Shown: piece by piece, positions 8,701-64,000 of the stretch
How positions within the stretch are numbered: position 1 is the stretch's first letter
Layout: the number at the start of each line of letters is the position of its first letter
Assembly (NCBI GenBank): GCA_009103225.1
Contig: RHPI01002076.1
Span: 150,205 to 214,204 of the forward strand
Direction: 5' to 3'
Length of the DNA: 64,000 bases
DNA from: Chlorokybus atmophyticus
Lineage: Eukaryota > Plantae > Mesostigma and Chlorokybus algae
The notes under the pieces: model-generated
Told to the model about the DNA's origin: nothing
Seen by the model: the letters and a program-made list of their open reading frames with translations, nothing else
Database searches by the model: none
Made by a program: the position numbers and the translations under genes

Positions 8701-10790
8701 TTCATCTCGTCTTGACTTTGCCAGTCACCCACAGAGGCCTGCCACTTACGTTGTTAAATTAGCCACTGTGAAAACTACTCTCGTCATGACCAAGGCAAGG
8801 ATCAGGCAACAGCCACCCGCTCATTGCCTTGCACTTTGCATTGACAGCAACTGGGTTCTATGACTGCATCCAAAAGCATAGATCAGGCAACGGGTCACAA
8901 GAGGTCAGGTAGCAGAGAGTGTCTGGCCTGCACTGGTTGTAGGCACTTGTCACGCACTCAGTTAGGGGGCTTACTTGCTCCGATAGATCTGAACGGGAAA
9001 GCCACCACCCCTTTAGCTGCGTTGCTGCATGATGCAGGTAGCGGAACTGGCGATCCCCCATGTGTACATGCTGTGGCGCAGACCATGCGCATACTACGCA
9101 CTTCTTCAAACACCGCCTCAGTCAACTGCGAGGAGAGTCTCCGATGCCCCCACTCCGTGCAGACATGTCTCGATTTGCGTAGGCAGCCATAACTGCTAAC
9201 CGAGGGTATAACCTGCCCGCAGCTTTTTATATTTCACAGCTAGCTGCTCTGCGGGCAGGTTTAGCCTTCGGCTAGCAGGACCGTTTTGCTCAAAGAGTAA
9301 TTTTTTGATCAGGCCGTGTCTCCGCGTGTCTTTGAAGAAGATAATAACCAATCCCAGCACTGTGGCATTTGCCAAACGACCAACCGCCCATCTGTTAACG
9401 TCACCTGCAACCACACATCCTTGAGTAATGTGAACCTACTCAATGGTTCGCATAACGAACAACCACGACAGTGCTGACAGTCGTTACAAGGGATCAGCGA
9501 GTACGGTCGTCAACAGCACGCGCTGAATTTGGTACTATCTAGTAGATCACTTTGCCATCACATCCTTGGCGTCTATACCAGCACCAAGGCTGTGTGAGAT
9601 CGTGTGCTGGCTGGCAAGGCAATGTTGCAGACCTTGCTTGCGGAGGAGATGGAGGAAGCTAGCCTGTCAGTTTTACACTACCAAGCTGGTGCTGTGAGTG
9701 GCGCGATCATGCATCAGATGTGTGTACTTAGCGATGTTGGGCTGGCCCCGTGCGTTCGCCTATGCGCCGGTTGAAAAGTAGAAGCAGATGACAACATGCG
9801 AGTATCAGCACTCAAGGCAAGTGCTTGCACTGCAAGCACTGCAAGTACTTGTCTTGAATGTGATGTTGGCAACACCAACGCTTGTGTTTGCGGCAACTGG
9901 GCAGCACAACGGCAGTGCACTTGCCAATCAAGCACTTGCTGTCTTTTGATGTAGTTCATGAATACATCAGCTCCACCTCAGTTCCTTATGGGTACCTATA
10001 ACCAACATTGTTAGCCCCCCACCCGCCCACCCACCCCACCCCACCCCCACGCACGTACGCATGCCACCAAAGCAGCCATTGCGCATGATGCTGCGAAATT
10101 AACTATCGCATGCGTTTCTGATCACCACTACAGTAAATGCACAACTGGGACAGACAAAGGGGTCAGCAAGTGTTCTTTGCATCAGCGCGTGCTGGTATCA
10201 ATCGGTGTTGGGTCATTTCCATCATAGCCCCTGACATCACGTTAAGCATTTGCACTTTTTTGTTATTCACCAAACAGTTGTTTGAACCAAAGCAGCGGAA
10301 GCCACGATTGTTCATTGGTTGTTTGAGCCCTTTGCGTCGAAGATGGACATTGTTGCCAGCAACTACGATATTATGGTTCCAGCCTGCAGTGCAGACCGAC
10401 ACTGTCACGTGCCCGGCGAAGTACGTACCTGTTCTCACAAGTGTTGCTACCACTGGCGCACCAACAAACTGTTCACACTAGTAACCGCCAAAGCAACCTA
10501 CAACCAAAGCCAGTGTGGCATTGGTCACGATGTCACTAAAGAACACTGAGATAACAATTGATGCATGTCAATTCTTACGTGACAATAAGAACAATGCACC
10601 AGGCTGCTGTAATAAGCCACAATGTTTACCCTTTCCAATGTCATAAGATTCGCTCAACTGGTTGGAACGGTGCAGTATGGCGCTGCATAGCGCATCCAAC
10701 AGCAATTGCTACATAACACGCATGATGATGACGCCATTGGCCAAGCAATCAGCACATCATCTTCGCATCAGCCGTTGCTGCATGGGACTG
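5795..10790 (+). repeat. Degenerate array of about 9 related units (CAAGGGATCAGC...CATCAG core), probably decayed BTB-like coding repeats
   Basis: The core motif recurs at about 5795, 6398, 6927, 7769, 8184, 8796, 9487, 10155 and 10742 (spacing about 400-850 bp). Translations such as FKDVVL...HQRAL, TDCNII...LHQHVLA and SKCSLHQRVL resemble the BTB start (DVxL...HxxVL). There are many stops and indels. Confidence 0.5.
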
Positions 10791-12480
10791 TTGAGCAAGA
10801 CATCATCCGTTGGCCATGAAAGCAGCTAACAGCCAGTACATGACGTGCATTGCTCGCACTGCATAACTTGGATGAAGCTTACAAAGTATGCTAGCAGCAT
10901 CACGCCTGCACTTCAAGAGTTGAAGCTCCTTGCAGCCGCTGTCCATGAGCAAGCGTTGTTTTGCAAATCACAATTCTGGCAAAATTCTTCACCAGGCATA
11001 CTTACGCAGGCACCATGCTAATGATTCTGGCATGCTAACGCGTGCGCTTCACATCCGTGCGTGTGTCTGTGTGGGACATCGTGTGTGTAGAGCTAGACTA
11101 CACGCGTAACACTGCAAACCGGACATGCGACCCACAACTTGCAACACTGTTGCTGTACACATGCGTTGCTGTGCGCCCGCATGTGTACAGAAACGGCACA
11201 CACAGTGTGCATCATGCATACCCATGGCGTGCCCACGTGCCCACGTGTGCGCATGTCGGCAAAAAAAAGTGCACGCGTGCATGAGTGTGCGTGCATGCAA
11301 CTGCCAGTCACTTTGCAGAGGATTAATACATACTGTGTGTGTTGATGCTCTGCAAAGCGAGTATAAGCTGCGTGGCATCTACGCTGCCATGCATTCGGAC
11401 AGACGGAATGCCAATAGCCTTGCGTTCAATCAACGTTACACATTTGGTTTTCATGCAGCGAATGAACAGCAAAGGTTTTAATGTTTTTGAAGTGATGCAT
11501 ACTCTGCGGCAGCAAGCGCAGAGTCAAAGAGCGAAGCGCTTGCGCATGGCAGCTGCCGCGTTAAGCAATACGCTCAGACAATGCTGTATGCAACATGCTG
11601 GGCTTGTAACCTAAGGTGGCAGCGATTTGGCCGAAGATGGCACGCGCGTTGCCGTACCTGCTCACTGGAAGCACGGCAACGCACAATCAGTGCTTTTAGC
11701 ATGCAAGCATGCGTAGCACTCGCAGGTTGCCTGCGAGCAACCAGCACGAATCATCGCGCACACATGTAGTTTGTGCGGTTAAGATTGGTTGTTTTAGGTA
11801 TGCCACAGAACTTTAGTGCAATCTTCAACCTAGCATGCATGGCGCAGGTTTAAGCATGCTAGCGATAAGGGTGAATTTGCCAGTGCATACACCCAGCAGC
11901 CACATGTTGAGGCCAGACGGGCTGTGCCAAAGCAATCGGGCGTTATGCTTGGCGCAACCACAGTCGAGCGCAGAGGTCAGCTGAGGCCGCTATGCATGGT
12001 GACACTGCAGCAACTTATGAAGCTGCTTGAAGGCGACAGCTAGGGTTTGACAAGCCGTACCTGTCCCCTTCACAAAGGTACGTCATATTGGAAGAGAGGC
12101 CCTGCGAGAACAACGCAGATGACAGTCAATTGCCAGTAGTCAAGCCGCAGACTCAGTTATACAAGCAAGTTCTGCCCACTCCGCCTGTAAAAGTCAACTT
12201 AGTGGTAGCCAACGCTTTTCAGCCGGTTACCACAGGACACTTGACCAGTAGCTCTCCCCTCCCGAGCATCGAGCAGCAGATCGTCAGGTCGCCCCTTCTG
12301 GCAGTGCATGTGCAACGGGCAAACCCTTCCTCTCCATGCGATGGTTACTAATACTACCCAGCCAATTGCCTTGCACACTTCATGCCACGTGATTGCCGTT
12401 CCGCCGCTCGCGTGATGAAAGGGTCTCTACTGAGAGCATGCATAATTGGGGCTGAGCTGTCATGCATTCCCAAGCAGCAG
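10700..12480 (+). pseudogene. BTB/BACK-like multi-exon pseudogene ('family Z'), 3' part
   Basis: LQELKLLAAAVHEQALFCKSQF (about 10915) matches LQPLKLFAAAVHQPPLARYCERQLF at 37.4 kb (-), which resembles a BACK helix. Downstream blocks (VMHTLRQQ, PSSPCxGxY, ACIIGAELS) are colinear with 36.8-35.8 kb. Multiple stops. Confidence 0.4.
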
Positions 12481-32952: not shown

Positions 32953-35339
32953 ATGATGGCGGTGGCAGCTGATGGTGGCGATGCATATGTGCTTGCTTTG
33001 GAGCTCCAGCTGCAGGAACTTCATGCCCAGCGTCGGCTGGAGCAGGACGCTGCCTTGGCGCTGTGCCTTCAACTGCAGCCTGAAGACGATGATCCAACCT
33101 TTGGCTGCCAGTTAACAGCCGATGACATTGTCGGTGAGCTCCTTGAACTATGCCAGCCTTGAGAAGACATCAACTTGTGCTCAAGTACATGCAGCACAGC
33201 ATGCAACCTGTGGTTCAGTGCAAGAGCCCGGCTTGTCTGCCTCCAGCATGACGGATAGCACGGGGCGTGCTGTCTGTCATGAATGAGAAGTTCCATTGGT
33301 CACTACCAGTGTTTTCAGGGGTAGCATCAGGCATGTGTATGCTCGCTACTGACATACCTGGGCAGCTAAAGATATCACCAGCAGCGGCTACAGTGTTGCG
33401 CCAATACCACTGCAGCTGTTGGAGTGCAACGATGCCTTGTCCTTGCTTGACGAACAAATTGAAGCCCTCAGTCAAGTGCTGCAGGCAATCAAGGACAGCG
33501 AGGTAGCGTACTACTTAGGCAAAACTGTGGTGCATGCATATGCATGGGCTGCAGCAGCACCATGGTGAGATCGTGCATGCATCAGGTGGCAGTGGCTCTG
33601 CATGAGGTTGAGGAAAGGCAGCACACAATTGTCGCACACGATGTTGAGTTTGCCAAGTATCTAGCAGCTGTTTCCGAGCACGAGTGGAGGGTTCATGGCG
33701 ACAACTTTTCTAGACCGATACCGTCCGGAGGCGAAGAAACCGGTAACACGCCAACACAACCTTAGTTGTAGTTGTTTCAACACTTTGCTCAACTCTCAAC
33801 TCGACAAGATGAGTGCATTCTCTGCGGCAGTGGTTTCAAAGAAATCACTGACTCTGTCACTGGCTCTCTGGCAGAGCCATCGCCGTTGAAGAACCATAAG
33901 GGAGTGGTTGGCTCGTGCGCGGAAAAAGGCCTTGAGTGAAGGCTATAAAGCTGACTTGATTGACTGCATGATTTGTCTTAATCGGTGCCACAGACGGTGA
34001 GCTTTCTCGTGTTTTAAACACTGCAGACACTCGATGGACTGTTCTCAATGCCTGCCCAAGCTTGTCTGAGGTCGCAGGAGACTTGCCATCCATTGTTGCC
34101 GCTGGACATTACGGCAGTGCCCGATTGCTCAACCAGCGCCCGTGCAAGCGGCTGCGAACACAAGATCTGTTTTATGTGCGCGGCTGAGTACATCCGCATT
34201 GAGCTTGACGAACACAAGTATCCCATCAGATGCGCGCACCCGGGTTGCATGTAAGTCACTTACACAGTGTGCTTGTGCTCGCCACAGTGTGCGTGTGCGT
34301 GTAAAACAATCGGCAACAGTAGTCGCCCGGTTTGGTGTGGTCTCATGGTACCTGCGCACATATTCACCAACTGTACAGGTGGATTTTTGGTCTTGACGAT
34401 GTGAACAAGGCTATTCGACATGATGCCAAGCGGTTGGCTCTCGTCCAGCGTCTGGCGGTGGAGGCTGGCATGAAGAACAAAGTGTACTGCCCGCACACAC
34501 AATGCGAGGCCGTGATGGACATACTCAACCCCAAAGGCAAGATTGACTGTTTCAAGTGCCACCGCCCTTTCTGCGCTACATGCCGAACCGCCTGGCACAC
34601 TGGCTACTCGTGCGAAGAGTACCAGGCGCTGCCTGACCACTTGAGGTGGCACACCATGCGCGTACACTTGTCTTTGGAACAACAGCTAGCAATGCTGAGT
34701 TATTGGGTTTTAACAGAACCGCAGAAGATTTGCAGATGCTGCGCCTGGCTCAGCAAAAACTTTGGCGTCGCTGTCCAAATTGCAAGCACATGGTGGAAAG
34801 GAACCCGGTGGGATGCAACTTCATGATGTGCCGTTGCAAATCAGCATTCTGCTATCAGGTGTCTGCCAGTGTTGCGGTGTTTATAAGTACTGGTTGGCCA
34901 TGTTATGCATCCCTGCACACCCACGCACACACGCACGCATGCATGTACTTCAGTAGTACTCGCGTATCCACACATGCATGCGCACGCGGACACACCCAGC
35001 GGCATGCGTGATGAGAGTATGTCATATGCTCCGCTGAGCTGCAACCTCTAATTCTGTCACTCCAATGTCAGTGCGGTGTCGCGTACATCAATCTAGTTGC
35101 CAACGCCAACAACAGCCATGGCAAACCAGGCTGCCAATGTGGACTCTTCGAGCGCCCCGCAGGTAATCGAGGATGGAGATCATCATGATGACGTGGGGAT
35201 GCTGATATGACCGACAACAGGCTCGTGAACCGCCGACAACAAGTCCGTCGTTCCAATCACACGTGCCATTGCGGCAAGCTGACCGCCGCCATGGCATCCA
35301 CCGCTGCTGGTTCGGCATGAAGATGAACGAGATGTCTAG
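32953..35339 (+). pseudogene. RBR-CCCH E3 ligase copy C (frameshifted)
   Basis: Exons 32953-33133, 33366-33502, 33586-33742, ~33809-33987, 34078-34250, 34379-34645, 34717-34858 and 35072-35339 parallel copy B. An extra A in gcggaaaaaggcc (about 33925) gives an in-frame TGA, there is a -1 at cttaatcgg, and the last exon is frameshifted and has lost the CCCH finger. Confidence 0.85.
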
Positions 35340-35699
35340 CTGTGACCTGCTTGACTTTTTGTACATACAATGTTGTATTGGGTCTTGTAGGTGGTGCAAT
35401 TTGCCACGAGTACGTTTGGTCACTCTGTAGCCAACGTAGTTTTGACAACGACAATCCGTTGTCTGTCATCCAAAAGTCTATTGATACAATACCGATGGTT
35501 GGAAGGAGGGCTGTAGGGCTGTGGACATCTTCCACAACGGTTACCTGCGTCAATGTAAGCTTGCTATGCTATGCGCATGTACGCAGGAGTGATAGCGAAC
35601 CCTTTGCAGCAGCATGTACATATGTATTCGTACTTACACATTACAAGTTGAAGGCGCGCACCAAATGAGGACACGACGGCGTTATGCGTGTTGTGCGCA

Positions 35700-38600
35700 T
35701 GTCACATGTGTCGCTTGATCGTAAATGCCTAGACTGCGCCGCAGGCTGTATTGTGCAGCGTACAGCATGATGTATCATATCCAGCAGTGTGACGCTGCTG
35801 GGCATGCCCCCCAGCCTTGGCTACTGAAACGCTGTGCTGCCTAGCGTTTTGGTTCGGGTCTTTGCGCTAACCCATTTGTTCGGCAATGCATTGACAGGTC
35901 CGCCCCGATCATGCATGAAGTCTCTAAGGACTCTCGCGGCATAATGTACTTTGCAAGGCAGCTGCTTTGGTCGCTGCGGTAGTCACCCTCCCATGGTGAG
36001 GAAGGTGTCCATTGCTCACATGCAGCCACTGGCACGGGAGCTGCGCAGTTTCCAGCTGGAAGGGGCAACCTGACGGTCTGCTTCTTGATGCTCGCCCTCA
36101 GCTGACCTCTGCGCTTGACAGTGGTGCCCACAAGCATACCTCCTTATGGCTTTGGCAGCGCCCGTCTCCCCTCAACACCCGACTGCGCTGGATGCATGCA
36201 TTGACGTGTTCAACGTTGCTAGCGTGTTTGTGCATGCTGGGTTCAAGGTTGTTCCTTCAGTTCTGTGGCACGATCGATGCTACTCCATCAGTCCTCAACC
36301 GCACAACCTACATGCTTGGAGTAAACGCTGATCTGCTGCGCTGGTTGCTGACAGCCAAGCTGATGTAACGTGTCACACCAAGTTGGAGCATATGTTACAG
36401 AAGGCTTGGCTGCAGTTCATTGGCAAATCCGCCAGTCCATAAGGTAAAGCTGACCAGGTGCATGAGTACTACCCATACTTTCATGACAAATCTAGTGCTA
36501 ATTGCCAAAGCCAGCACTGCTTGTAGTATCATGCAGTGCTGGCTTTGCTTCCATGCAGCAGGTGCAGCAGCACTTCTGGCATCCTCAGCCAAGTAGCTGT
36601 CATCTTAGATTGCATGCCCAGCATGCTGCTTGCATGCAGCATAATCTGAGCAGTATCCAACACAGCCGCCGCCATGCGCGATTCTTGGTACTCTCGAGTC
36701 TCACCTGCTGCCGCAGAGTATGCATGACCTCTCAAGACCTCCTGTGCATCCGCAGAGTATGCATGACCTCTCAAGACCTTCTGTGCATCCGCTCTCTCGA
36801 TACCAGGTGAGTAACGTTAATGGAACGCTGTGGGCTGATGGCGAAAGATTGGTTCTACTTGTGTATGCATGGCAAGCGTAGATGCATACGCATTCACTTT
36901 GCAGAGCATCAACATATTTGCACGCGCAAGTGAATACGCAAGCATATGCGAAGCAGCAAGGCTCGCGTACGCACATAGACACGTGATCATGTGCGCGTTA
37001 GATATGCGCATGATGCAAACACATGCTGCTCAGCACACTTTGTGCCGCTGTAGACAGATGTGCGCGAAGACGCACATGTGTCTTTGATGGCATGCGCGTG
37101 TGAGTAAGCTATGAGTTCACTGTTTGTGACATTCCAGATGCCGATGGAGCATTAACTCGTGGCGTTCTTGAACCGTTCATGCCTGCAGTGCGTTGCTTGA
37201 TGTGTTTGAACCGATCTCAAGTCTATGATGTTGCATGTTGTGGCTCGCACCCGGTTTGCTGCGTACGGGCGTAGTCACTAGCGCTATGCACAGGATCTCC
37301 GGCACTGAGACATGCATCCAAACACAACGCACACGCCGGGTAGCATGCCAAACCGTGCCTGTGCCGAGTGCAGGAATTGACAAGAAAATAACTGCCTCTC
37401 GCAGTATCTTGCCAACGGTGGCTGATGGACAGCGGCTGCGAAAAGCTTTAAAGGCTGGAGTGCAGGGATGGTGTTGCTAGCATATCTGGTAAGCTTGCAA
37501 CACCCACCTGATGCACGTCCTGTTATGGCTACTTGTGGCTTTTTCATGTTCAATGTTGAGCTAACGGAACAAAACAACGTGTCTTTTCCAAGATTTCCCA
37601 TGCAGCAGTGGCTGATGAGGAGATGACGTGCTGATCCGTTGGTCAAGGCGTGAGCATTGTTTAGCAATTTGGCTCAGCAATTTGCTGTCGGATGCACTAC
37701 TTAGCACTATACTGCACCGCATGATGCTGCATACATGGTGGTCATTTGTGGTTGCAGCCTAGTCTTGCAGTCATTGGTGTTCAATCTGTCGCTCAAGCGT
37801 TGCCATGCAACAACCTTCTCACTGACATGTCCTTTTGAAGGCTGCTTCGGCACTCTAGCGAACAGTTCTGTTGGTGCGGGCCTGCATTGCAGGTTGAAAC
37901 CATCAGATGGTGGTTGCTGGTAGCGTTGTCCATCCTTGTGCAAGTCAACGCATCCAATGCATCATTGAAGTGCTTCAAGTATCAGCAAGGTGGGGGGGTT
38001 GAACGTGCACTGCCTTGTGCAGCCTGCCCAGTTGCCGCAATTTGAAGTTGGGGGCAAGCACCTGTGCATGCTTGGTTGCTCGCAGTCACACTGTGACATT
38101 GCCGATTGCTTCTAGGCCGTGTTTAACAACCTGTTCCTGTTCAACATGGCGGACTCCTGCCAGTGGGGGAAGCTGTGGTCGACACAGTAGAGTGCGTTAT
38201 CAAGTTCGCTGCTCTGTTCATCGGCTGCGTTGGCGTAAGGCACGTAAGTTGGTAGGTTAAGGCAAATGGCTAGCGATTGGCTCTGTTTGGCAATGCCAGC
38301 ATACATGCTGCCTCACATGCGTTCAGCACATACGTGAGGCAAGTGGCAGTTGAGCTGTCGCCTGCATGCTTCAGTAATGGACGGTTTAGTGCAATGCGTG
38401 GTTGGACTTGCCACTTGAAACCTTTGTTGTTGCAACAAGTACAATGGCAGCCAGACACCCTGCTGAGCCTGCCTTTGTTTTTTCGCCAGAAGTGACAGTG
38501 TTTTACGGTTCTTGTGCACTGACTCCTGGCCCCAGCGACTCTGCCGTCGTCATGCTCTGACAGAGTGCAGCATCCATGCACTGCAGGAAATGATCTCACA

Positions 38601-38800
38601 TTCTTGAATGGTCATTGCAGCTAAAGGCCACGGGATGGCCTCATGGTGGCTTACGCTGTTGTGAAAGCTTACAGAACGAGATAAGTGGCAGGCCTCTGTG
38701 GGTGACTGGCAAGTTGAAGTTGAAGAGTTAAAGAGTTCATGCAGCACTTCAAGTGCCAGCGTGGTGCTGCTTGCTGCATGGTTTCCATGCGCCATGCTAG
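35700..38800 (-). pseudogene. Family Z BTB/BACK-like pseudogene, inverted paralog of 8.6-12.5 kb
   Basis: An exact 31-nt match, ttgccagtcacccacagaggcctgccactta (8718 + / about 38700 -), plus several further colinear blocks. Multiple stops. Confidence 0.45.
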
Positions 38801-39374
38801 AGTGCTGCCATTGCTGAAACCACGTGGCACACGTCATTGTGCCTGCAGGGCATCATCTCCCAGAAGCAAACAAGTGTGTACGTTCAAGTGCTTGCTTGCA
38901 TGTCATATCGCCAATGATGATCACCGTCATGAGGCAGCTCGAACAGTTGTGGAGTGTAAAGGATGCTGACAATCTGTCGCAGTCAAATCTTTGATTCATG
39001 TAGAGCACTTCTGGCTGACCTTGGTCTTCCTGTCATTGAGTCAACTAAACCTGGCAGGTCTTCTTTCCTTTGGTGTGTTGTGGGGCTTCCGACCAAGAGT
39101 GGTGCGTGGAAAGCGCTGTTGCGCAGTCATAGCGGCGCAAAAGTGTACGACAGTGTTGTAGCGTGATGCTGTGACAATCTGCTATAGTGACAACCTCGCT
39201 GTGAGCAAGTAATGGTGGAACGCTTCAAGCGCTTGCATTGATGACGTCAACTATTGCCCTCATCACCACGGTTGCAAAGTTGTGCATGGTCTGTTGATGG
39301 TAGAAAAAGTGTCAACAGCATGTGTTGTGTGTTGCACTTGTTTCTAACAAACGTCATGAGGATCATTCTCAACT

Positions 39375-40260
39375 ATCTGATGATCACTCCTGAGAAGGAG
39401 TGGCGGGAGCGTGGTGCCACTTACATGAGACCAATACCGGTTGGAGAACAAGGTGAAGCAAACCGGCCGGTAACACCCAAACAGTGCCAACACCATGGAT
39501 TGCTGTTTGCACGCCAATGTACACAACTCTTGGCAAGATACGTGCATTCTCTGTGGCAGTGGCTTGGCTTCAGACAACTCAGAGCCACCTTTGTAAGAAG
39601 AGTCCAAAGCGGTCGGCTCGTGCGCGGAAAAGGCCTCGAGTGAAGAAGACGAACCCAACCCGTGGTTCACTGCATGGTCTGTCTTGCATCAGTGCGGGCA
39701 CCGGTGGGCTGTTTGGTGGTTCCAGCACTTCACGTGATAGTTGTCTCACTTCATATCAACACCGTGTTGATATAGAGTGACTTGCCTAAGTACGTGTGGG
39801 TTTGCAGGATACGTGCCTTCCATCCATCGTTGCCACTGGACAATGCGGCCATGCCAGAGTGCTCAACCAACGCCCGTGCAAACGGCTGCAAACACAACAT
39901 CTGTTCCGGGTGCGCAGCCGGGTACATCCGCATCGAGCTGGCAGAACATAAGTACCCCAGCATGCGTGCGCACCCGGGTTGCATGTACTAAAGTCCGAAG
40001 CACTATTGTGTGTGCATGTTGGCAACATCATCATGATCGTCGCCTGGTACAGAGGTCTCATGTTACAATACCATGAGGTCCTCGCGCACATGTGTGACAC
40101 CTGTACAGGTGGGCTTCTGGGGTTCAAACCCAAACAAGTTGTTGATGTGAAGGAGATCATCATCCAACATGAGGCTGCGGGTTGCTCTCTTCCAGCGTCT
40201 GGCGGCGGACTGGGTGTCCGTCTCAAACTGCCTGGCCAGCCACATCGTGCATTGCATGTA
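39375..40260 (+). pseudogene. RBR E3 ligase copy D (heavily degraded, lacks RING2)
   Basis: EWRERGATYMRPIPVG, CILCGSG...*..GSCAEKASSEED, GCKHNICSGCAAGYIRIELAEHKYP...HPGC, and a broken IBR exon starting ctgtacag|gtgggc at about 40109. Confidence 0.8.
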
Positions 40261-40407
40261 ACCCACATGTACGCATGCACAACGCATGCAAGCTCGTATA
40301 CGTGGAGAGATTCTGCCGGGGGACCTGTGTGTGGGTGAGTAACCATACACAGTGGTGAGTAACCATACACAGTGGTGAGTGAGACTTAGTCCCCATCTTC
40401 ATCTTGC

Positions 40408-40477
40408 CTGTTGATGACGAAGCGAATGTCGTCTGCGTTGAGCTTGAGTGTGAGGACAGATGTCAATGTTGGAAGGA

Positions 40478-40550
<73 letters not shown>

Positions 40551-40843
40551 NNNNNNNNNNNNNNNNNNNNNNNNNNNNNNNNNNNNNNNNNNNNNNNNNN
40601 NNNNNNNNNNNNNNNNNNNNNNNNNNNNNNNNNNNNNNNNNNNNNNNNNNNNNNNNNNNNNNNNNNNNNNNNNNNNNNNNNNNNNNNNNNNNNNNNNNNN
40701 NNNNNNNNNNNNNNNNNNNNNNNNNNNNNNNNNNNNNNNNNNNNNNNNNNNNNNNNNNNNNNNNNNNNNNNNNNNNNNNNNNNNNNNNNNNNNNNNNNNN
40801 NNNNNNNNNNAGAGAGAGAGAGAGGGAGAGAGAGAGAGAGGGA

Positions 40844-40884
<41 letters not shown>

Positions 40885-43110
40885 AGAGAGAGAGAGAGAG
40901 GGGGGGGTTGTTCGCCTGTCTCCTGTTGCGCGTTACGCTGGAGAAGAGCTGCGTGGAGTTGTCGAAAGAGGTACAGGGCTGCTGACCCGCATTACGCTTC
41001 GCTATGTCAGCCTGACGAGATGAGAGTGTGGGTGCTGTGTGGGCGTGTGCGTAGGGGAGTAGCTGGGCGTGTGGGTGTGGGTGTGCGTGCGCATGTGCGT
41101 GGGGATGATTTGCATGTGAATGCGTGAACTTGTGCGTATATACGCGTGCGTGCCCATCTGTGTGTGCACGTGTGCAAGCAAGTGTGTGCGCGTGTTTGTG
41201 CCTTCATGTGCCTGTGCGTGTCAGTTGCGTGTGAACGCGCACGCACGCGCATGTGTGTCTGCATGTGTGCTTGCGTGGGTGTGTGTACACGTGTGAATGT
41301 GCAGCTGCGTGCGCGTGTGTGTGCGTTTGCGAGCATGTGTTCATTGACTGTCACTGTGTCCACACAACACAACACACTTACAGAGATGTCGACGATCTGG
41401 TTGTTGATACAGCTGCCCGCTGGGAGCGCGCGAGCACTTCCCATGCTGCTACCTGTATGACACGCCACATCACGTCGTGTTGATGTTATATAAGTTGTGT
41501 TGAAAGAGACGGAATCCTTATTGAGCGAGAGAGTGCGTCTGAAACTGCATCAACACTACCTACTGGTACTACCAGTAGGCTGAGAAGGAGGTGCCGATGA
41601 GGTTGCACTGCGTGCTGTCCATTGAGAACTGCGTCTTGTCCACCACAAGCCACTGGTCCCTCCTCACTTTTGTGACAGACACACACACACACACACGCAC
41701 ACGCACACACGAGATGCAACAAGTCAACACATCTGTCATTTCACCAAAAGCGCTCTCGCACACATGCACGCATACCCAAGTTGTGAGGTGGGGTATGAGC
41801 AGGAGCTGCGACGTCATCACCCTCAAAGACTACACACACAATCAGTCAACAACACTCAATCACAAAAACACAACACATCCACAATGATCACGCTCCCAAC
41901 CGTGTACGGCGCCGTGGAGGGACTCCAACACCAAAGACTCCTGTGTAACACATTGTTGGTGTGTTGAGATGTGGGTATTTTGACCTGTTGGTGTGTGGGT
42001 ATCTTGGCATATGCTGGAATTTTGGAAGCAAGGGAAGTGTTCCGTGTGGTGTAAGGTTTGTGTACCGATGTGCTGGTATGGAGTGGTTGAATTGAATCTC
42101 AGGCAATGGTAGCTCTCGCTCATATTCCCGAACAATGCGTCGGGACCGTTGCCGAATGTGGAGTCCCAGGTGTTGTCGGAACCGCAGCCGCAGCAGAAAC
42201 CCTGGGGGATAGAGATGCCCACAGCCACAGATACATACAGACACCCACGTACACATGCACGCACGCACATACGCAAGCGCACGCACACATGCAGTGACAC
42301 ATGAATGCACACGTGTGTTTTTACGTGCGTGTGTATCTGGGTGCATGCGTGCGTGCGTGCGTGAAATTCATAAGTCCAAGTTTTCATCCGCAGGTGGGGC
42401 TTGAGTCGAAGTCGCCTGCGCTGCTATAATTTCACAACTCGGACGGGGCGTAGTGAAAGTCTTGATAGCAAGGGTGAGAGCAAGTGAGTGGACTGGCCTG
42501 CTCTGTATCACACACACACGCACGCGTCCACCCACCCACCTTTTTCATAGTAGATGGGGCATGTGTTGTACGTACCGATATGGCGTACGGCACCGTCATG
42601 GACTTGACTCTGCCGTCCACGTTGGCAGCCTCCGTCACGTAGGCCTGCACGCTCGTCGTCGCCAAGGTCTGCAATGAGGGAGGCGGACACAGCCTTATGG
42701 TGAGGAACACTCTCGCACGTGTGTATGCATGCAATCACATGTTCATATGCGCGCACGTGTGGACACGTGCGTGCCTACACACGGGTGTGTGCGAGCCACA
42801 CGCACACACACGCGCGAATACCTCTGCGACCCACCCAACCACACTCAACTGTGTGTGCATGTGCGCATGTGTGTTCACTGCGTACTGTGTGTGCGCGTGC
42901 GTGTATGATACACGCACGCACACACGCCATCCACACTCGCCCACCCACATCAGCACTCACGTGTCCGCTGGTGACGCTCATGGCGACGACCACCTTCTTG
43001 ATACACCTTATGGTATTGTTTGGATTCATCCCGACGGTGTTGGGATTGACACAAGTGTTGATGCCAGGATTGACGAATCGCCATCAACGGAGACAACATT
43101 GCGTTCAAGT
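40408..43110 (-). pseudogene. HAP2: HAP2/GCS1 class II gamete fusogen, disrupted and 3'-truncated
   Basis: Successive minus-strand exons in HAP2 order: TCVNPNT...RCIKKVVVAMSVTSGH (~43100-42961); TLATTSVQAYVTEAANVDGRVKSMTVPYAIS (42668-42576); ASPL...YQDFHYAPSEL*..GDFDSSPTCG* (42497-42384); GFCCGCGSDNTWDSTFG...YHCLRF (42201-42066); GVFGVG (from 41940); SQLLLIP (41829-41776); DQWLVVDKTQFSMDSTQCNLIGTSFSAY (~41665-41575); PAGSCINNQIVDI (41452-41382); ADIAKRNAGQQP/LYL (from 41011); TSVLTLKLNADDIRFVINR (~40474-40408). These match remembered Chlamydomonas and Arabidopsis HAP2 motifs. Confidence 0.9.
40476..40905. repeat. (AG)n/(AGAGAC)n microsatellite flanking a 260-N gap (40551-40810)
   Basis: Directly visible; it lies inside the HAP2 locus. 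Confidence 0.95.
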
Positions 43111-43289
43111 AATGTTCAGAATGACATGCATGATGAGCGTGTATCAGATGCACTGCTGAGATGCAGCATCGAACTCATCACTGTGTGCACGTTCAGTGCC
43201 AGCCTCACATGACATATCATAAGCCACGAGCTGATCCAAGCATCAACCTGCACTGCACTGCTGTTACGTTGCAATAAGATTGTCGCATG

Positions 43290-44760
43290 TCGCGAGAGGG
43301 TAACTGTTTTGCATGTTGCTGGACCATTACAACATCAAAGAGTGCATCGAAAACTGCCATGGCAATGGCGACCTTCAATTATGCGACTTCTGTAAAGAAG
43401 CCTTCCATATTATATACGATTGGCTTCAATGACATGCAGGTTGACGCTTGGTTGTGTTTGCGCGTGTGCGGTGCAGGTTAGACACTTGATTGCATGCAAA
43501 TATACATGCATACTGACAACCCTTACCTGCACAGCAGTCCTGCCACACATGCACGGTGCCTGCCGCTGATGCTAAGTGCTGGGCCTGCAGAAGGGCCTCA
43601 TGGCCAAACAACTCTAACCTTACGCGCAAGCTGGCAGTCTCCTGGCTGCTGATGGCAACATTCAAGGCAAGTCAGTTGACTTCAAGTACTCAAGTTGAGT
43701 AACGTAGTAACATTCACCCCAAGCATTCACAGTAATGATGGTGATGTTACTATTACAACCAGCTGTACTTGGCAGATACTGAAGTCAATCCCAGGCAAAA
43801 CGCTCAAAACACCCAGGCAGTTGCAGAACATGCAAGGTAAGCAAGGCACCTTCTTGCGTGTTGTTTGTCAGTTTCCAGTCAATAATGCCAGTCACTGCCA
43901 GTCATCAATAGTAATGCAACCATTGCATAGGAGCAAGGAGCCACATCAGCGATGTGTGCGTGCCCTGTCAAGTGGAGGTTATGGGCAGACATCAACAAGT
44001 GTTGGTACCTGAAGTGTACTTCTGCCAGGCTGCCAAGAGGACAAGTATATATACCGTTTTTGTTTAGCCCAAGAGGTGAGACAATACACAAAGCTCGTAA
44101 GTTTGGCTGTTCAGTCCGTTGCACCATTGTGATGCGGTTGTTAACATCAAGCAAGTGTGTTATCATTATCTTACACGCTTATGCGCACGCATGTGCACGC
44201 ACCCATGCATGCGAGTGTGTCACCATTATCTCACACACGTATGTGCACGCGCACGCATGCACGCACCCACACACGCACGTATGCGCACAGTGCAATACTG
44301 ACTTGACATGAATAAACCTTCCAACGCCACTCCATTTGCGCAAATGTGCGGCGTTTATGTCTTAAATGGCGGCATAGAATCAAACACGTTGCCAAAGCCA
44401 TCCAAAGTAGTCCTTTTCAACAGCTGTGATTCGTCATGCATGCGCTCAGCGCGCCCAACATGCAGGAGGTTGTTGTCGGACGCCTCTAATAATGCTGACG
44501 ATGGTGAGTCTGTATAAGAAGCTAAGCGTCAGGACACAAGCGAAGGTATGTAGAAAGTTATCAACATTAGGACTTCATGCTGTATTCTCACGTTGCAGTT
44601 TTGGATGTGTGTTTGGTAGTACCAAACACAGTCTAGTACACTCAATCATGAGGGCAAATTATCATTGCAGGCGTTTCAGGATAACAATCTTGACGCTGGT
44701 AATGCCGGTAATGCTGTCGTTGCCGATGACTGGCTCTAGCAACAGCGCAGTGCGTTGATC
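43290..44760 (-). pseudogene. Possible decayed LRR-protein remnant
   Basis: Scattered LRR-like peptides in broken frames: LLEASDNNL, LKRTTLDGFGNVFDSMPP, LRALCIVS, LLMSAHNLHLTG, LQYL, LEYL. No coherent ORF. Confidence 0.2.
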
Positions 44761-45322
44761 ACCGTATGTGTGCCGCTACTGCAAGCTGGTCACCTGCTGC
44801 TTCTGCGCAGACCACTGCTGGGTTTACGAAGATGTAGCAGAAGTCCAGCCTGTGAGCACCTGCTTGACCAACGCAGACAATGCAGTACTGAGCCTTATGG
44901 CACGTGCGACTGTTGCAATTTGTAAGCCTTTGGGAATGTGTTTGTTTTCCACAACTGCTGCCAAGTCACGGCCTTGAAGTTGCTGCTGAGCTGGAATTTG
45001 TGATGGTGTTTGGCTGTAGCATCTAAAGCTACATTGGCCGCTCTGTGGCCAATGCAGCTTTGATTGCTACGGTTTGTTGCTTCAGAAAAATATGTTGTGT
45101 TGATGTGTTATCAATAAGTGAGGAGAGCTGCCAGCAGGTGACTGAAGCGTTGGTAGCTGTTTGTGCATATTCCATGTTGGTTACCTGCTGTGATGCAAGC
45201 ATGCTGTGCTATGTGCATGCACAAGTGCGACAGCATCTGTCATGGCAGCTGTGTTTGTCAACCATAGCTGCAATTTGCAACTTGAAGGCGTGCACCGCAC
45301 GAGCACACAACGTACAAGCCTC

Positions 45323-48300
45323 CTAGAAACCAGCGACGCGTGTTCGTTTTGCAGCTTGCATGACCTGCTCAGAGGCAAGCCGCCTCTTGCCGGCAGCTGC
45401 ATCTATGGCCGCATCGTCCAGGTCATCCTGGATGTCACCGAGGTTGTCCACACCCTCAAGCTCTTCATCATCACCGAGCTCCGGCTCGCCATCCTCAAGC
45501 TCTTCCTCCTCCTCCTCCGCTGCCTCCTCAACAGCTTCACCCTCTGCAACCTCACTGGTATGCCTCTCAAAGAACTCAGCAAACCTGTTGGGCTTTCTCG
45601 GCACCTGCAACCATGTTACTTGACTTCTAGCACGACAAGATTGACTTCTACATCACATTTGATCATGACATTATAACTTACCTGGAAGAAGCGTTGGCGC
45701 TCACGCGCGTTGCTGACCATCTCGCCCCAATGCTCGTTTGTTGAGAGCTTGGCTGCGGACCCGATTACCAGCATTGACGAGCGAGCGCGCGTGAGACCCA
45801 CATTCATGCGCCGCTCATCTGCGAAGCATCCAAGAGTTTGTGTTTGTTGATAATCACCTGGAAGTGATGATCAACCTTAACAACACCCGAGTGTTTCAAC
45901 ACCTGACAAGAAGCCTATTCCTCCTCGCCGCTTGGAGCGCACGCATGAAAAGATAGCAATTTCCATCTCACGCCCCTGCCAGTGACACAAGCCTGAGTAA
46001 TCTGGCTGACATGGGTATGTTGCATGATGACAACAATGCTTGGAAATGGTGAATATGACACCAACTACTACATGCCTGAAATCCGTCGACAGTGTTGATG
46101 TCAATGAGCCGTTCCACATCTTTGCCAAACAGTTCAGTGAATTTTGTCCGCAGCAGCTTGACCTGCGCCTTGTACCTAGCAAAGAATCAGATCTGTGCTG
46201 CAACCCAACTCCCCAACAGTATATCATACGGACTTGCGCACAAACAGGCGTTCAGCTTACGGAGATATGACTCCAGTGCGCCTGCCTTCTTTAAGCTGGG
46301 GATATTTGCTCACCAATTCCTGGTAGATAGCCAATGCAAATACTGCCTCCTCCTCATTGGCATGCGATCCACCCTGCAGGAGCAGTGCAAACAAACAGCT
46401 TTGGAAACGAACTGGGGCTGACCTGAAAAACTGAGCAATAGATTTATGCAGCCTGCCTACCTGTGGGGTGGTTTCTTTGCCATTGACATTGAAGAAAGCA
46501 AACGGGCCGAAGATCCTGTGCTTGTGCCAGGGCTGCGTCGTCTGCTCCAAAATGTTGGCACCATCCTCCAGCGATCCACCGTAAAAGTGATTGGACGGAA
46601 ACACTCTGATCTGTAACACAACAACACCCCACTCATTAGCAACATGTACACATACATTCGCACACGCACACCCCCACACTCACGCGCGCACACACACATG
46701 CACACATGCACACAGTCACACTCTCGCGCGCGCGCCAGAGAGAGAGTGTGTGNNNNNNNNNNNNNNNNNNNNNNNNNNNNNNNNNNNNNNNNNNNNNNNN
46801 NNNNNNNNNNNNNNNNNNNNNNNNNNNNNNNNNNNNNNNNNNNNNNNNNNNNNNNNNNNNNNNNNNNNNNNNNNNNNNNNNNNNNNNNNNNNNNNNNNNN
46901 NNNNNNNNNNNNNNNNNNNNNNNNNNNNNNNNNNNNNNGGGGGGGGGGGGGGGGGGGGGGGGGCGCGCGCGCATGCACGCACACACACAGTACTGACCTC
47001 AGGATGCATGCGGTATTGGGTTCGCAGCATGTGGACGGGGTGTCCTGCCTGCTGGAACCTCTTAAACATGCTGGTGCCGTAGCCGAGCTGGACGGCTCTG
47101 CTCGACAGCACCGTTGCGGGCAGCTGGATGGGGTCTCCAACGAGTATAACTTTCTTGCAGCCGTGCGCTAGCGGGACGAGCGTCGACGGCTCCACCGCCT
47201 GTGCCGCCTCGTCGATCACAACGACATCGAAACCGCGCGTCACACGAGAGAAGATGGCGCTGCCGCTGAAACTCAGCGTCGAGCAAACCTGTGCATGAAC
47301 GTAGTTTGAGTATTAAAGTGTAGACATGGAGGCTGCAGAGTAAGAAACACACACATACAATGGCTGCTTCATCAAGAATGGCAAGCCGGATTCGGTCGCG
47401 CTCAGTATTGACATCCGATCTTCCTCCGGCCTTGCGAGCCGCATTCAACCTCTGATTGACCTGATGAATGACAAGCACAAGTCAACACTCAAATAGCTTC
47501 TTATGAACTAAAATTCTCTGTTGAGCAAGCCATGTTGCATGTGCGTGGGCACGCATGCATGCGTGCCCACGCACATACATATGTCATGCATAGCTCACCA
47601 TGGTGTCCATACAGACGCCGTGCACAGAATGGTGAGGGTTCAATCCAACACGAACGATATTTGGCACGTAGTGCTTTCCTTGCTCGTCCGGAATGCCGGA
47701 GTTGAGCATACGCAACACCAACTCATCCAATGCAGAGTTGGACGGCGCACAAACAAGCACATGAGCACGGCGACCGTGGCCTTTGCCCAGCTTTGTTAAA
47801 ACCTGGACAGAACGTTGTTGGACTTTGCTTATGACTGCAAGCATGCATTATATCAACACTACATACCGCATCTGGTGTGCCAATGGTTTCAAAGCGAGTA
47901 AACAGTTCGTCTTCAACGGGCGTTACCGCATCGCGAACATTGCGACTGTTTCTCTGCCACGGGGCTGCACGCAGCCAATTAAGCTTCCTTTCTTCTTCGG
48001 TCATTTGACTCTGCGGAGCGACATCAAGAAGTTCTGCACTGCAACACCATGGTCAGGCTTGTGATAATAACAACATCAACTGCTGCTACACATGCTGGAA
48101 CCAGTTGCTCCACACATGACCGCATGCCTCTGCATATCTTAACAATTTGATGCAGCGTCTGTTGGCAAAGAGTCATGGTCCCAGCAATATTTGCAAGTAT
48201 GCAAGCAAATGCAGACTTCAGCCCAAGGGTTATGATGATGTATAAAGATCAGCATGAGACACATTGGCAGCGTCAACGTACACGCTCTTGGCCTCGCCGG

Positions 48301-58619: not shown

Positions 58620-61600
58620 TTATGGGACAGGAGATGAATTCCAATAAGCTCGAAGCAACTCGCGGCAGTGCGTAAGATGCCTGTCGGGCTCCCAACTGTT
58701 ATGTTCTGGGCCATACCCTTTCCATTTCACCAAATAGCGAGTTGCGCGTCCTCAACCATTTAGCTTATGGTTCAATATAGCTTCCACCTCGTATTCGAGC
58801 TCGCTGTCCACCTCAACTGGCGGTGGTGGAGGCTGTGTTCTACCGTCTGAGCGGTAAGGTTTCAACAAGTTTACATAAAACACGTTGTGTATACGCACAC
58901 TTGGGGGCAATTGCAGTCGATAAGCGTGCGTACCAACTCTATCAGTGATAGAGAAAGGACCTAACCATCGGGGCAGCAACTTGCGAGCACCCGTACCTTT
59001 GATGGTTATGTTTTTTGCATTCAGCAAAACTTTATCGCCGACATCGAAAGTGGCCATTTTTCGATGTGTATCAGCATAAGCTTTTTGCCTGTCCTGTGCT
59101 TCTGACAGACACAGCTTGGCTCGAGCCAAATTTTCTTGCATATTAGTGGCAAATTCTTTTGCCGCTGGCACAGTCACGGCATGGCGAGGTACACGCAATG
59201 ACGCTGGTGTGTTCGGGCGAATCCCATAATTCAAGAAAAATGGGGTTTCCTTTACACTTTCCTGCCACGCGTTGTTCACAGCGAACTCTGCCATTGGCAA
59301 GTACCTGTCCCAATCAGCATGATTAGGAGCCACATAGTGGCGAAGCATTTCTTCCAGTATTTGATTTGCTCGCTCAGTTTGACCGTCCGTTTGCGGGTGG
59401 AAAGCAGTCGACATGCTTTGTTTTACCCCCAACAATTCACAGACTTCTCGCCAAAACTTGGAGACAAAACGAGGATCACGATCTGTGACAAGTTCACGCG
59501 GTATACCGTGAACGCGAAAGACCGTGGACACAAATAAGTGTGCCAAGTCCCGTGCACTTACAGTTGTGCAACACGGGGCAAAATGCACCATTTTAGTCAA
59601 ACGGTCGACAAAAACCACAATAGCAGTGTATTTAGCTGCTGTTTCAGGTAGGTCAGTAATCAAATCCATACTGACACTATCCCACTTTTGTTCTGGAATT
59701 GCCAATGGTTTAAGCAATCCCGCTTGTTTTTGTCGTAGTGGCTTATTACGTTGACACACGTCACATGTGCGAACATATTGATCCACGTCAGCTGACATTG
59801 ACGGCCACCAGTATAACTGTTGCGCAGATTTGAGTGTTTTGTGTTTCCCCAAATGCCCAGCATACGGCGGGTCATGCACTGAATGTAAGCATTGCTTACG
59901 CAAGTCGCCCGAGTTGGGAATTGCCAACTGCTCCCCTTTATACCACAGATTGCTAACAGCAGTAAGCTGTTGCAAGTTGGTTTGACTGCTAAACCAATCA
60001 TCTGAGTTATAACCTGCGGACACTTCCTTTAAGAAAGGATCTTCAGGCTGTTGTACATTACGCGTACTTCGAGAGCGCGTAAGTGCCAAAAGAGCAGGGC
60101 TGCGACTTAGTGGATCCGCCACATTGGTGCGACCCGGACGGTATTGCCAAGTGAAAGTGAAACGAGAAATGAATTCATTCCACCTAGCTTGCCGCCTCGA
60201 CAGATTTTGTTGCGTATGAAAGAATGTGAGCGGGTTGTGATCAGTAATCACTGAAAACTCCACCCCTTCCAAGTAGCAACGCCATGTGCGCAGCGCGTGC
60301 ACCACCCCGAGCAATTCCTGCTCAGTGGTTGTGTAATTACGTTCAGCAGGAATGAACTTTCTGCTTTCATATGCACATGGTCTGTCATCTTGTAGAAGGA
60401 CTGCCCCACACCCAATGGTGGAAGCATCACTGATCACCACAAAAGGCTTGGTGTGGTCGGGGAAGGCTAACACAGGGGCTTGTGTTAATGCATCTTTAAT
60501 GCGTGTAAAAGCAACCTCGTGTGCCTCCGTCCACACAAATTTAACATCTTTTCTTAGTAAAGATGTTAAAGGGTTTGCCATGCCAGAATATGCTCGCATG
60601 AACTTGCGGAAATAATTGGCTAGCCCCAAGAAAGCACGTAACTGATGTACATCCTTGGGTGGTGGCCAATCCTTTACCGCACACACCTTTTGAGGATCTG
60701 GTTTCAATCCTTCTTTGCCAATCACATGCCCTAAAAAGGGTAGTTCATCCTTTGCAAAGTTGCATTTGGACAGGTTGGCATAGAATTTGTGTTCGCGTAA
60801 CTTAGCTAGAACCAATTCCACATGCCTGTGGTGGTCCTCCCGGGTTTTGCTGAACACAATAATGTCGTCTAGATATACCAGTACAAACTTGTACAATTCA
60901 TCAGCAAATACCGCGTTCATTGCTGTCTGAAATGTAGCCGGTGCATTTGTTAACCCAAATGGTAACACTTTATACTCAAAGTGTCCTAGTGGGGTGCGAA
61001 ATGCAGTTTTTTGTATATCCGACGGGTGGATTTTGATTTGATGATAACCACTGGTCAAATCCAGCGTGCTGAACACTGTTGCACCTGACAGCTTATCAAA
61101 CAAATCATCAATCCGAGGCAAAGGGTATCTGTTTTTCACAGTGACCTTGTTCAACGCACGGTAATCAATACACATGCGTAGCTTGCCATTCTTTTTGGGC
61201 ACAAACAAAATTGGTGCACCAAAAGGAGATATGCTCTTTGTTATTAAACCTTTGTTCAATAACTCTTTGAGCTGTTTTTCCATCTCCGCGTGTTCTAAGG
61301 GACTTAACCTGTATATAGGCCGCCAAGGTGGCTTTGCCCCCTCCTCTAATGGAATGGTATGATGTATGTTTCGATCGGGAGGCAACTCTGGGAGTTCATC
61401 CTGAAATACATCAACGTGTTGTTCCGTAAGTGACTGCACCACAGGGTCACTGATAGCCTGTTCAGCAGGTGTTTCCACCTGTCGTAAGTGCAGTAAGTAT
61501 ACTTCCTCACGTTTACGCATGCAACGTTTCAATTGCATAGCAGAGAGGAGCGGAACATTATCGCGTGGTATACGTGCGAGTACAGATGCTGTTAAAGTCA

Positions 61601-62348
61601 TCCTACGTTTCCCTTTACGAAGGGTGCACGTATTGGCTCGAGAGTCTAATTGTAAACCTGCTTCAGTGTGCCATTGTTCCCCTAAAACAACATCCACCCC
61701 GGGGATACCAATATCCACCACGATGAAGGCTGGTCGGGTTATATGGCCATTAATAACAAAACGCCCTTTTACCTCTCCCATTGCATTGAGAATGGAACCA
61801 GCAGCACGTACGTATGACGTGATTGGTGTGAAAGGAGTGTTATTACGTTTCACCCAAGCATGTTCAACAAAGTTATGGTTTGCACCAGTATCAATCAATG
61901 CTGTACATGGTGTATTCATAAGTTGACTCTCAAATCTCCATTTGAGTGGCACTGAGTGACCATCAAATGTAGCTAATGTTGGAGTGCCGTGATTGGTAGC
62001 AGACTTGATCAAGATCACTTGCAATGGTGAAGCTCCTGTATCTTTGCGTGAGAGTTGCATGATTACTTCTCCCCCTTTCAACAATCGTGACCACGGGCCA
62101 TGATATCGAGGGATAACTACACATGCAGTAACAGCATGTTGTAATTGCAACTTGTGTAAGTGCGTAACAGCAATTACTAATTCAGAGAATGGAACATTGA
62201 TTAAAACACAACCGTTTGCATTTCTTAACACAGGTGGTGTGCTCATATCAGTCCATACATCTGATACATCACAAAGAGAGGAAACTTTATCAAGAAGTAC
62301 AGAGTTTTTAAAGTCGTTCTGCTCGACTAAGCTACCAACCACGGACAA
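58620..62348 (-). CDS. Pol polyprotein (Dam-like N-terminal segment, aspartic protease, RT, RNase H, integrase, chromodomain)
   Basis: ORF 62348-58752 carries ALIDTGA, LRMCIDYRALN, VYLDDII, SDAS and the integrase HHCC/DDE motifs. The chromodomain (YEVEAIL...[16 protein letters not shown]) continues in frame past the TGA at 58754-58752 to a TAA at 58620. Confidence 0.93.
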
Positions 62349-62416
62349 TTCCTATTTCTTGTCTCTCTGCTGCTTGACCTTCTGTGCATTCTGTTTTGCA
62401 TAGCACGTAGCCTCCC

Positions 62417-63102: not shown

Positions 63103-63182
63103 ACGGTTTACGAAGGTGAGAGAGGAAGTGTGTGGGCGTTTACACTTTTCATTCGGAAGCGGAGTGTAGTGTGTTAGTAGAG

Positions 63183-64000
63183 ATGGAGGATGCTCGCATG
63201 GAAGAGCTTCAAGCTGCCATCTTGGCACTGAGGGAAGAGCTTCATCACACTCAAGCGGCGGCACAAGCACAACGCGAGGCGTATGAGCATGCGATGGCGC
63301 GTGTACAAATTCCCATGGCATCAAGCTCGCGAGTGCATGTGAAGGTGCCAAAGCCCAAGCCATTTAAGGGTCAACGTGATGGAGATGCAGTGGATGAATG
63401 GATTTTTCAAGTATCGTCTTTGTTGAAGCTCACGGAGGTGCCAACGCATCTGCACGTGGAGGTTGCAGCGACATTGCTTGAAGGTGCAGCACTTGTGTGG
63501 TGGAGGCATCGATGTACGCGTGTTACAAATGGGTTGGCGCTACCATTGACCACCATGGAAGAGTTGGCACTGGAGGTCAGGCATCAATTTGTTCCCGTTG
63601 AGAGCGTGAAGGCCGCACGCGACAAACTTGCAGCCCTTGTGCAAATGGGGTCGGTGATGGCGTACACGGCCGCGTTTCAGCGATTGGTGATGTCCATACC
63701 CAATATGACCGAGGAGGAGCAGTTGGACAGGTATACACGTGGTTTAAAACCTTTGGGGCGTAAAGAAGTGGAGCTACGGGACCCGAAGACACTCGCGGAG
63801 GCTATACGCATCGCGGAGCGTCTCGACGCGTTGTACTTCAAGTCCACCACAAGAAACACTGACTGGAGGCAAAGGCATGGTGATCAGCCCCGGGGAGGCT
63901 TTCAACATGCATGGAGACGAGGAGAACCAAGTTCAGCACTTGCCAATGGAGGTGGAGCTGACTCTGGGCCTGCACCAATGGAGGTGGGTGCCATACACAC
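63183..64000 (+). CDS. Retrotransposon gag (partial, runs off the window)
   Basis: MEDARMEEL...VPKPKPFKG...EWIFQV...LLEGAALVWW...ARDKLAALVQMGSVMAYTAAF...RYTRGLKP...PKTLAEAIRIAERLD...GPAPMEVG. No stop before 64000. Confidence 0.92.
   Translation, partial: MEDARMEELQAAILALREELHHTQAAAQAQREAYEHAMARVQIPMASSSRVHVKVPKPKPFKGQRDGDAVDEWIFQVSSLLKLTEVPTHLHVEVAATLLEGAALVWWRHRCTRVTNGLALPLTTMEELALEVRHQFVPVESVKAARDKLAALVQMGSVMAYTAAFQRLVMSIPNMTEEEQLDRYTRGLKPLGRKEVELRDPKTLAEAIRIAERLDALYFKSTTRNTDWRQRHGDQPRGGFQHAWRRGEPSSALANGGGADSGPAPMEVGAIH

Follow-up and report, generated by a model that had tools for sequence, protein, structure and literature searches.

A broken copy of HAP2/GCS1, the gamete-fusion gene, lies on the minus strand of the 64-kb stretch of Chlorokybus atmophyticus DNA that was analysed here (the window), where intron-containing remnants extend from about 43110 to 40210. 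With a probability of roughly 85%, this copy is an unprocessed pseudogene of HAP2, decayed and truncated, and it most likely represents a dead duplicate. Ten or eleven exons can be counted, which are arranged in HAP2 order and separated by GT-AG introns plus one GC-AG intron (Table 1). A HAP2/GCS1 pseudogene had already been proposed by a previous sequence-only reading of this DNA, and the proposal has been borne out, with a corrected list of lesions.

Table 1. Features of the HAP2 locus and its neighbourhood, in window coordinates.
Feature	Position	Strand	Remarks
Putative N-terminal exon	42961..43110	-	...SSILAS in one frame, TCVNPNTVGMNPNNTIRCIKKVVVAMSVTSGH (43056-42961) in another
Exon A	42576..42668	-	31 codons, both ends in phase 0; canonical cag/ acceptor and /gtacgt donor
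Exon B, broken	42384..42460	-	conserved peptide divided between two frames
Exon C	42066..42201	-	GFCCGCG...HCLRF fusion-loop region; phase 1 end, donor g/gtacac
Exon D, ambiguous	41877..41940	-	two readings
Exon E	41776..41829	-	54 nt, symmetric, canonical sites
Exon F	41573..41666	-	(V)RRDQWLVVDKTQFSMDSTQCNLIGTSFSAYW; 5mf1 326-356; phase-2 donor
Exon G	41382..41452	-	TAG 41451-41449 and extra base 41415
Exon H	40937..41011	-	ADIAKRNAGQQPCTSFDNSTQLFSS; intact; phase 0 at both ends, cag/ and /gtaacg
(CT)n/(AG)n microsatellite	40466..40925		between exons H and I; encloses gap
Exon I	40408..40475	-	LPTLTSVLTLKLNADDIRFVINR; GC donor (ag/gcaaga)
Exon J	40302..40324	-	(R)SPGRISP, start of domain III
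Truncated RBR E3 ligase fragment	39356..40209	+	convergent with HAP2; homology to three window paralogs
Inverted paralog of snoRNA host region 8057-11989	36093..39177		67-78% identity, patchy

The homology to HAP2 is directly observed in profile searches and in sequence comparisons with PDB chains. Three exons match Pfam PF10699 singly, none of them reaching the gathering score: positions 110-156 of the profile are matched by exon C (42201-42066; E 1e-4), 251-279 by exon F (41666-41573; E 1e-5), and 335-366 by exon I (about 40475-40408; E 4e-4). These matches are collinear with the profile, which confirms the proposed minus-strand arrangement in HAP2 order. When several exons were strung together as composites, with an X placed at each break, exon H raised the Pfam score of the series from 44.3 bits to the 50.4 bits of the F+G+H composite, well over the gathering score of 27.4. 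Phmmer searches of PDB chains aligned the F+G composite with residues 327-378 of Chlamydomonas HAP2 5mf1 (E 6e-9) and the B+C composite with residues 110-159 of the same protein (E 1.5e-6, 31.6 bits, versus 22.7 bits for the whole ORF piece that holds exon C). The I+J composite resembles residues 363-389 of Arabidopsis HAP2, with RSPGRI opposite RSPGKI. Taken separately, exons C and F also match the Chlamydomonas HAP2 entries 5mf1, 6dbs and 6e18, exon C corresponding to 5mf1 135-168, and the top structural matches of the remnant are those of Chlamydomonas HAP2. With these proteins and with Arabidopsis 5ow3, members of the HAP2/GCS1 family (PF10699), the remnant shares the GFCCxC...HCLRF fusion-loop region, the W..(V/L)DK...CN.IG..FSA(Y/F) segment, the C-x7-C-(L/I)xxQ motif, the ADDI..V..RSPG.I motif, and the order of these motifs along the gene. 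Judged from these comparisons, the identification as HAP2 is far beyond chance.

Not every piece of the remnant carries such similarity. Exons A, D and E, like the N-terminal exon, have no detectable Pfam or PDB similarity and were placed by position and splice phase, which in the case of the N-terminal exon are the only grounds for its assignment. No HAP2 match was given by the N-terminal, G+H and C+D+E composites, nor any PDB match by the short peptide of exon B by itself. Nothing was matched by the GFCC exon in protein databases, including a library of 1.84 billion representatives; an exact-product look-up of the local ORF returned no entry, and a full-text search with HAP2 motif strings gave no match. 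Further copies of the HAP2 exons were not found elsewhere in the 64-kb window.

At the 5' end, the putative N-terminal exon is followed by a gtgagt donor that begins at 42960, and the translations upstream of it, when read through, revealed neither a start codon nor a signal peptide. A frameshift had been proposed here between ILAS and TCV; the letters are indeed present, but the shift is unconfirmed and the N-terminal exons match nothing detectably. Exon B is broken. Its phase-0 acceptor (42461/42460) opens a frame that reads TFTTPRPSC, while the conserved peptide SAGDFDSSPTCG (42422-42387), whose Chlamydomonas counterpart is RPSNKVCKDGDWEDSPTCGW, sits in another frame, flanked by TGA 42434-42432 and TGA 42386-42384. 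The upstream TGA had been listed as an in-frame stop. Its coordinates are right, but it is in frame only where the phase-0 splice of exon A does not lead, and the lesion is better described as a frameshift or a stop located at some point in 42460-42422. The downstream TGA had been located where HAP2 has SPTCGW, and it does stand there, directly after SPTCG and at or adjoining the Trp of this motif; phmmer pairs the Chlamydomonas Trp with a Trp three residues further on, in the +1-frame reading of exon B. The dinucleotide GT does not occur in 42431-42387, and beyond the TGA at 42386 the sequence offers no in-frame canonical donor to match the phase-0 start of exon C. Whichever frame is ancestral, exon B holds one break in 42460-42422 and another at 42386.

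Between exons C and F, a large part of the protein core is missing, as had been suspected from the apparent loss of internal segments. Profile positions 157-250 of PF10699 (about 94) are covered here by at most 37 codons, those of exons D and E, which show no similarity to HAP2. Two readings of exon D have been considered. In one, a base would have been lost from the CCC at 41921-41919, and VFGVGV is followed by PSTAPYTVGSVIIVD; in the other, splicing takes place from an earlier donor at 41907 and the frame is maintained. Neither is supported by Pfam or PDB matches, and the frameshift at CCC 41921-41919 is unproven, given that the donor at 41907 preserves the frame and that no search lends it support. 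The core strands of HAP2 are largely missing whichever reading of exon D is taken, and the remnant has lost approximately 60 core residues that separate the fusion-loop region from the WLVVDK segment in HAP2/GCS1 proteins. The introns between the remnants are rich in CA/TG. Several of them, including 42205-42370, have runs of CACG/CA followed by runs of TG/TGCG, and these make up inverted repeats inside the introns (42254-42288, for instance, pairs with 42329-42363). The sequence upstream of exon C is open in one frame.

The second broken exon is exon G. The first acceptor after the phase-2 donor of exon F leads to W and then to TAG 41451-41449, which stands opposite the Tyr of FRYQ in Chlamydomonas FRYQPSGCGRAPQACL. 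Downstream, QHGKCSRAPSG (41448-41416) and SCINNQIVDIS (41414-41382) lie in separate frames, with one surplus base at 41415. An alternative acceptor located 4 nt downstream, with which the exon starts at 41448 and not at 41452, sidesteps both lesions; however, this bypass ruins the C-x7-C spacing and scores 39.5 bits against Pfam, versus 44.3 for the broken conserved reading, a difference of 4.8 bits. Exon H, on the other hand, requires no repair. The -1 shift that had been proposed at QQP/LYL is unneeded, because the unshifted exon has canonical sites, is continuous in phase with exons G and I, and scores 50.3 bits compared to 50.4 for the shifted form. It extends the Pfam coverage to profile position 322-328. 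Between the microsatellite and LPTLTSVLTLK, with which the conserved part of exon I starts, no AG is present, and the first usable acceptor is at 40443. Remnants I and J are separated by the GC-AG intron, 40325-40407 (ag/gcaaga...cacag/g), which holds a perfect 20-nt tandem duplication at 40334-40380. Exon J is, according to the sequence comparisons, the last securely recognisable segment of HAP2.

An assembly gap (40551-40810) interrupts the locus between exons H and I, and it is bordered on both sides by the same (CT)n tract (40476-40550 and 40811-40900). No read contig crosses this gap or lies on 40296-41043. Since the HAP2 profile ends at 322-328 before the gap and resumes at 335 after it, the gap hides at most about a dozen HAP2 residues. 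The order and strand of the exons agree across it, which supports the scaffold join.

The gene is also truncated at its 3' end. HAP2 similarity ends at 40210, where the fragment of an RBR ligase gene abuts it tail-to-tail. The homology of this fragment to its paralogs halts at exactly 40209 in all three comparisons made, at the point where the paralogs enter the IBR domain; this domain is found in the RBR paralogs of the window and is absent from the fragment at 39356-40209. The HAP2 and RBR fragments are each without their own 3' part. Farther on, the place that the 3' exons of HAP2 would have to occupy is taken by the inverted paralog of the snoRNA host region. No HAP2 matches were found in the minus-strand ORFs of 38553-40420, downstream of exon J. 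As weak exons miss Pfam singly, the lack of matches to domain III (profile 367-515) is moderate evidence only, and neither a signal peptide nor a single-pass membrane anchor was seen in the translated sequence of 36000-44500. The remnant thus appears to have no domain III, stem, membrane anchor or tail. The locus is a patchwork of duplicated pieces (snoRNA-host-like, truncated RBR and truncated HAP2 fragments), and the window has undergone several rounds of local segmental duplication. Transposon hallmarks, such as long terminal or inverted repeats, were sought around 35000-46700 and none was found.

The quality of the assembled sequence was assessed with contigs built from three low-coverage DNA runs of one sample, which reach a depth of 2-3 and possibly come from the assembled sample itself. 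Among the contigs of run X1, one equals 42395-42560 with 0 differences and 0 gaps and spans the first break of exon B, which is the only one of the lesions confirmed by reads. The TGA at 42386, the TAG at 41451, the extra base at 41415 and the junction at 40210 lie outside the coverage of the read contigs. Another X1 contig is identical over 42025-42121, which takes in part of exon C, and a further one is 99% identical over 41762-41954, which takes in exons D and E, with two substitutions and no gap. In addition, a Ty3-type pol ORF of 1199 codons (58755-62351, minus strand) is uninterrupted and has all its domains, which argues against pervasive indel errors. These domains comprise a protease, a reverse transcriptase (RT), an RNase H, an integrase and an SH3-like domain. 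A gag/capsid ORF (63120-63998, plus strand) adjoins the pol ORF on the opposite strand and runs past the end of the window; the two probably belong to different elements.

The same contigs reveal arrangements of the HAP2 exons that the assembly does not hold. In an X1 contig of ordinary depth, position 42121 of the plus strand is joined to 36266, with an exact 30-letter consensus, and this junction is missing from the assembly. It may represent a collapsed tandem duplication of a 5.9-kb unit (36266-42121), a circle, or another copy. The X1 contig that covers exons D-E departs completely at 41762 into sequence absent from the window, which indicates a near-identical second copy of these exons elsewhere. 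Altogether, at least two further junctions that involve HAP2 exons are present in read contigs and not in the assembly.

According to these data, it is proposed that part of a HAP2/GCS1 gene, introns included, was duplicated at the DNA level, presumably through a segmental duplication whose source was a functional HAP2 in another part of the genome. The duplicate would have been cut just inside domain III, past its first codons, and attached to the truncated RBR ligase fragment, and disabling changes would then have accumulated in it. The parent introns are retained, as in unprocessed pseudogenes and fragments of segmental duplications, which are likewise cut at a rearrangement breakpoint, have truncated gene copies alongside and carry nonsense and frameshift changes. 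In contrast to functional HAP2/GCS1, the remnant has its frame broken in at least two exons and appears to be devoid of domain III, stem, membrane anchor, tail and signal peptide. The coding of the conserved ectodomain, which is uninterrupted in a functional fusogen, is interrupted here both in exon B (split, plus a TGA) and in exon G (TAG, plus a 1-nt insertion), and the class II ectodomain is incomplete, its similarity to HAP2 ending at the start of domain III. With domain III, membrane anchor and signal peptide apparently missing, the copy would not yield a functional fusogen. Duplication of this gene is not without precedent, as Pleodorina starrii has seven tandem GCS1/HAP2 paralogs, each with a conserved HAP2-GCS1 domain (PMC10256686). 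Both cases would concern green algae with more than one HAP2 copy produced by local DNA duplication, but the remnant described here, unlike the paralogs of P. starrii, is broken and truncated.

Several other explanations have been weighed against this one. It could be argued that the gene is intact, its apparent stops, frameshifts and truncation having been introduced by faulty assembly or sequencing close to a scaffold gap. The locus does hold a gap, the absence of the 42121/36266 junction from the assembly means that the region is imperfectly assembled, several of the putative shifts fall at short homopolymers (such as CCC 41921-41919), and most of the lesions lie outside read coverage. Nevertheless, the contig that crosses the first break of exon B agrees exactly with the assembly over 42395-42560, the contig over exon D has no gaps, a 3.6-kb ORF of the window is free of indels, and the loss of about 60 core residues together with the abutting RBR fragment is structural and not a matter of base errors, all of which make this explanation highly improbable. 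Even less credible is the idea that TGA encodes tryptophan in C. atmophyticus, in which case the TGAs would not be lesions. It would suit TGA 42386-42384, located where Chlamydomonas has the Trp of SPTCGW, but a single transition converts TGG into TGA, the other TGA is away from any Trp position, a TAG stands at a conserved Tyr, the stops occur together with frame breaks, and the TGA at 42386 is not followed by any in-frame canonical donor. This candidate was rejected on account of the TAG at Tyr, the frame breaks and the missing donor.

The remaining alternatives accept that the copy is altered and assign it another history or role. The sequence-only reading had left the choice between a dead duplicate and loss or relaxation of sex in the lineage, on which view this would be its sole HAP2, in decay. 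That the copy does not function is clear, as the latter view would require; however, its fragmentary and rearranged surroundings are typical of duplicated pieces, the reads reveal further HAP2 exon copies with other flanks, and HAP2 expansions are known in green algae, as in P. starrii (PMC10256686), so the decay of a sole copy is very unlikely. The dead duplicate is favoured by the 3' truncation, the joint with the RBR fragment, the duplicated surroundings and the extra junctions in the reads, while loss of sex is left unsupported. A further proposal is that the locus is in use, either transcribed into a truncated HAP2-like protein with domains I/II only or acting through a regulatory RNA on an intact paralog. 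Most exon-intron boundaries have canonical sites and compatible phases, and there is a path that preserves the frame, N-A-C-D'-E-F-G'-H-I'-J, in which exon B is skipped, an earlier donor is used for D and the alternative acceptor for G. Against this, the path sacrifices exon B, which is conserved, as well as the Cys motif of exon G, and encodes no recognised signal peptide or anchor, and symmetric exons make such paths likely by chance; use of the locus is accordingly quite unlikely. Unlikely too, if a little less so, is that the 5.9-kb unit 36266-42121 is a tandem, circular or genome-copied package (snoRNA host, RBR and HAP2) that corresponds to an unrecognised fragment-capturing element or acts as a source of antisense or small RNA against an intact HAP2.

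A dead duplicate is thus the preferred explanation, and the copy is an ordinary pseudogene, from which nothing can be concluded about sex having been lost or relaxed in C. atmophyticus. Since it bears the marks of a duplicated fragment, it also calls for caution: a decayed HAP2 in one window is not evidence of asexuality without a search of the whole genome. Gene models at this locus would mislead, as the remnants can be spliced along a path that preserves the frame but is meaningless. Should the genome hold one intact HAP2 and several fragments, this would add a modest data point on changes in HAP2 copy number in green algae.
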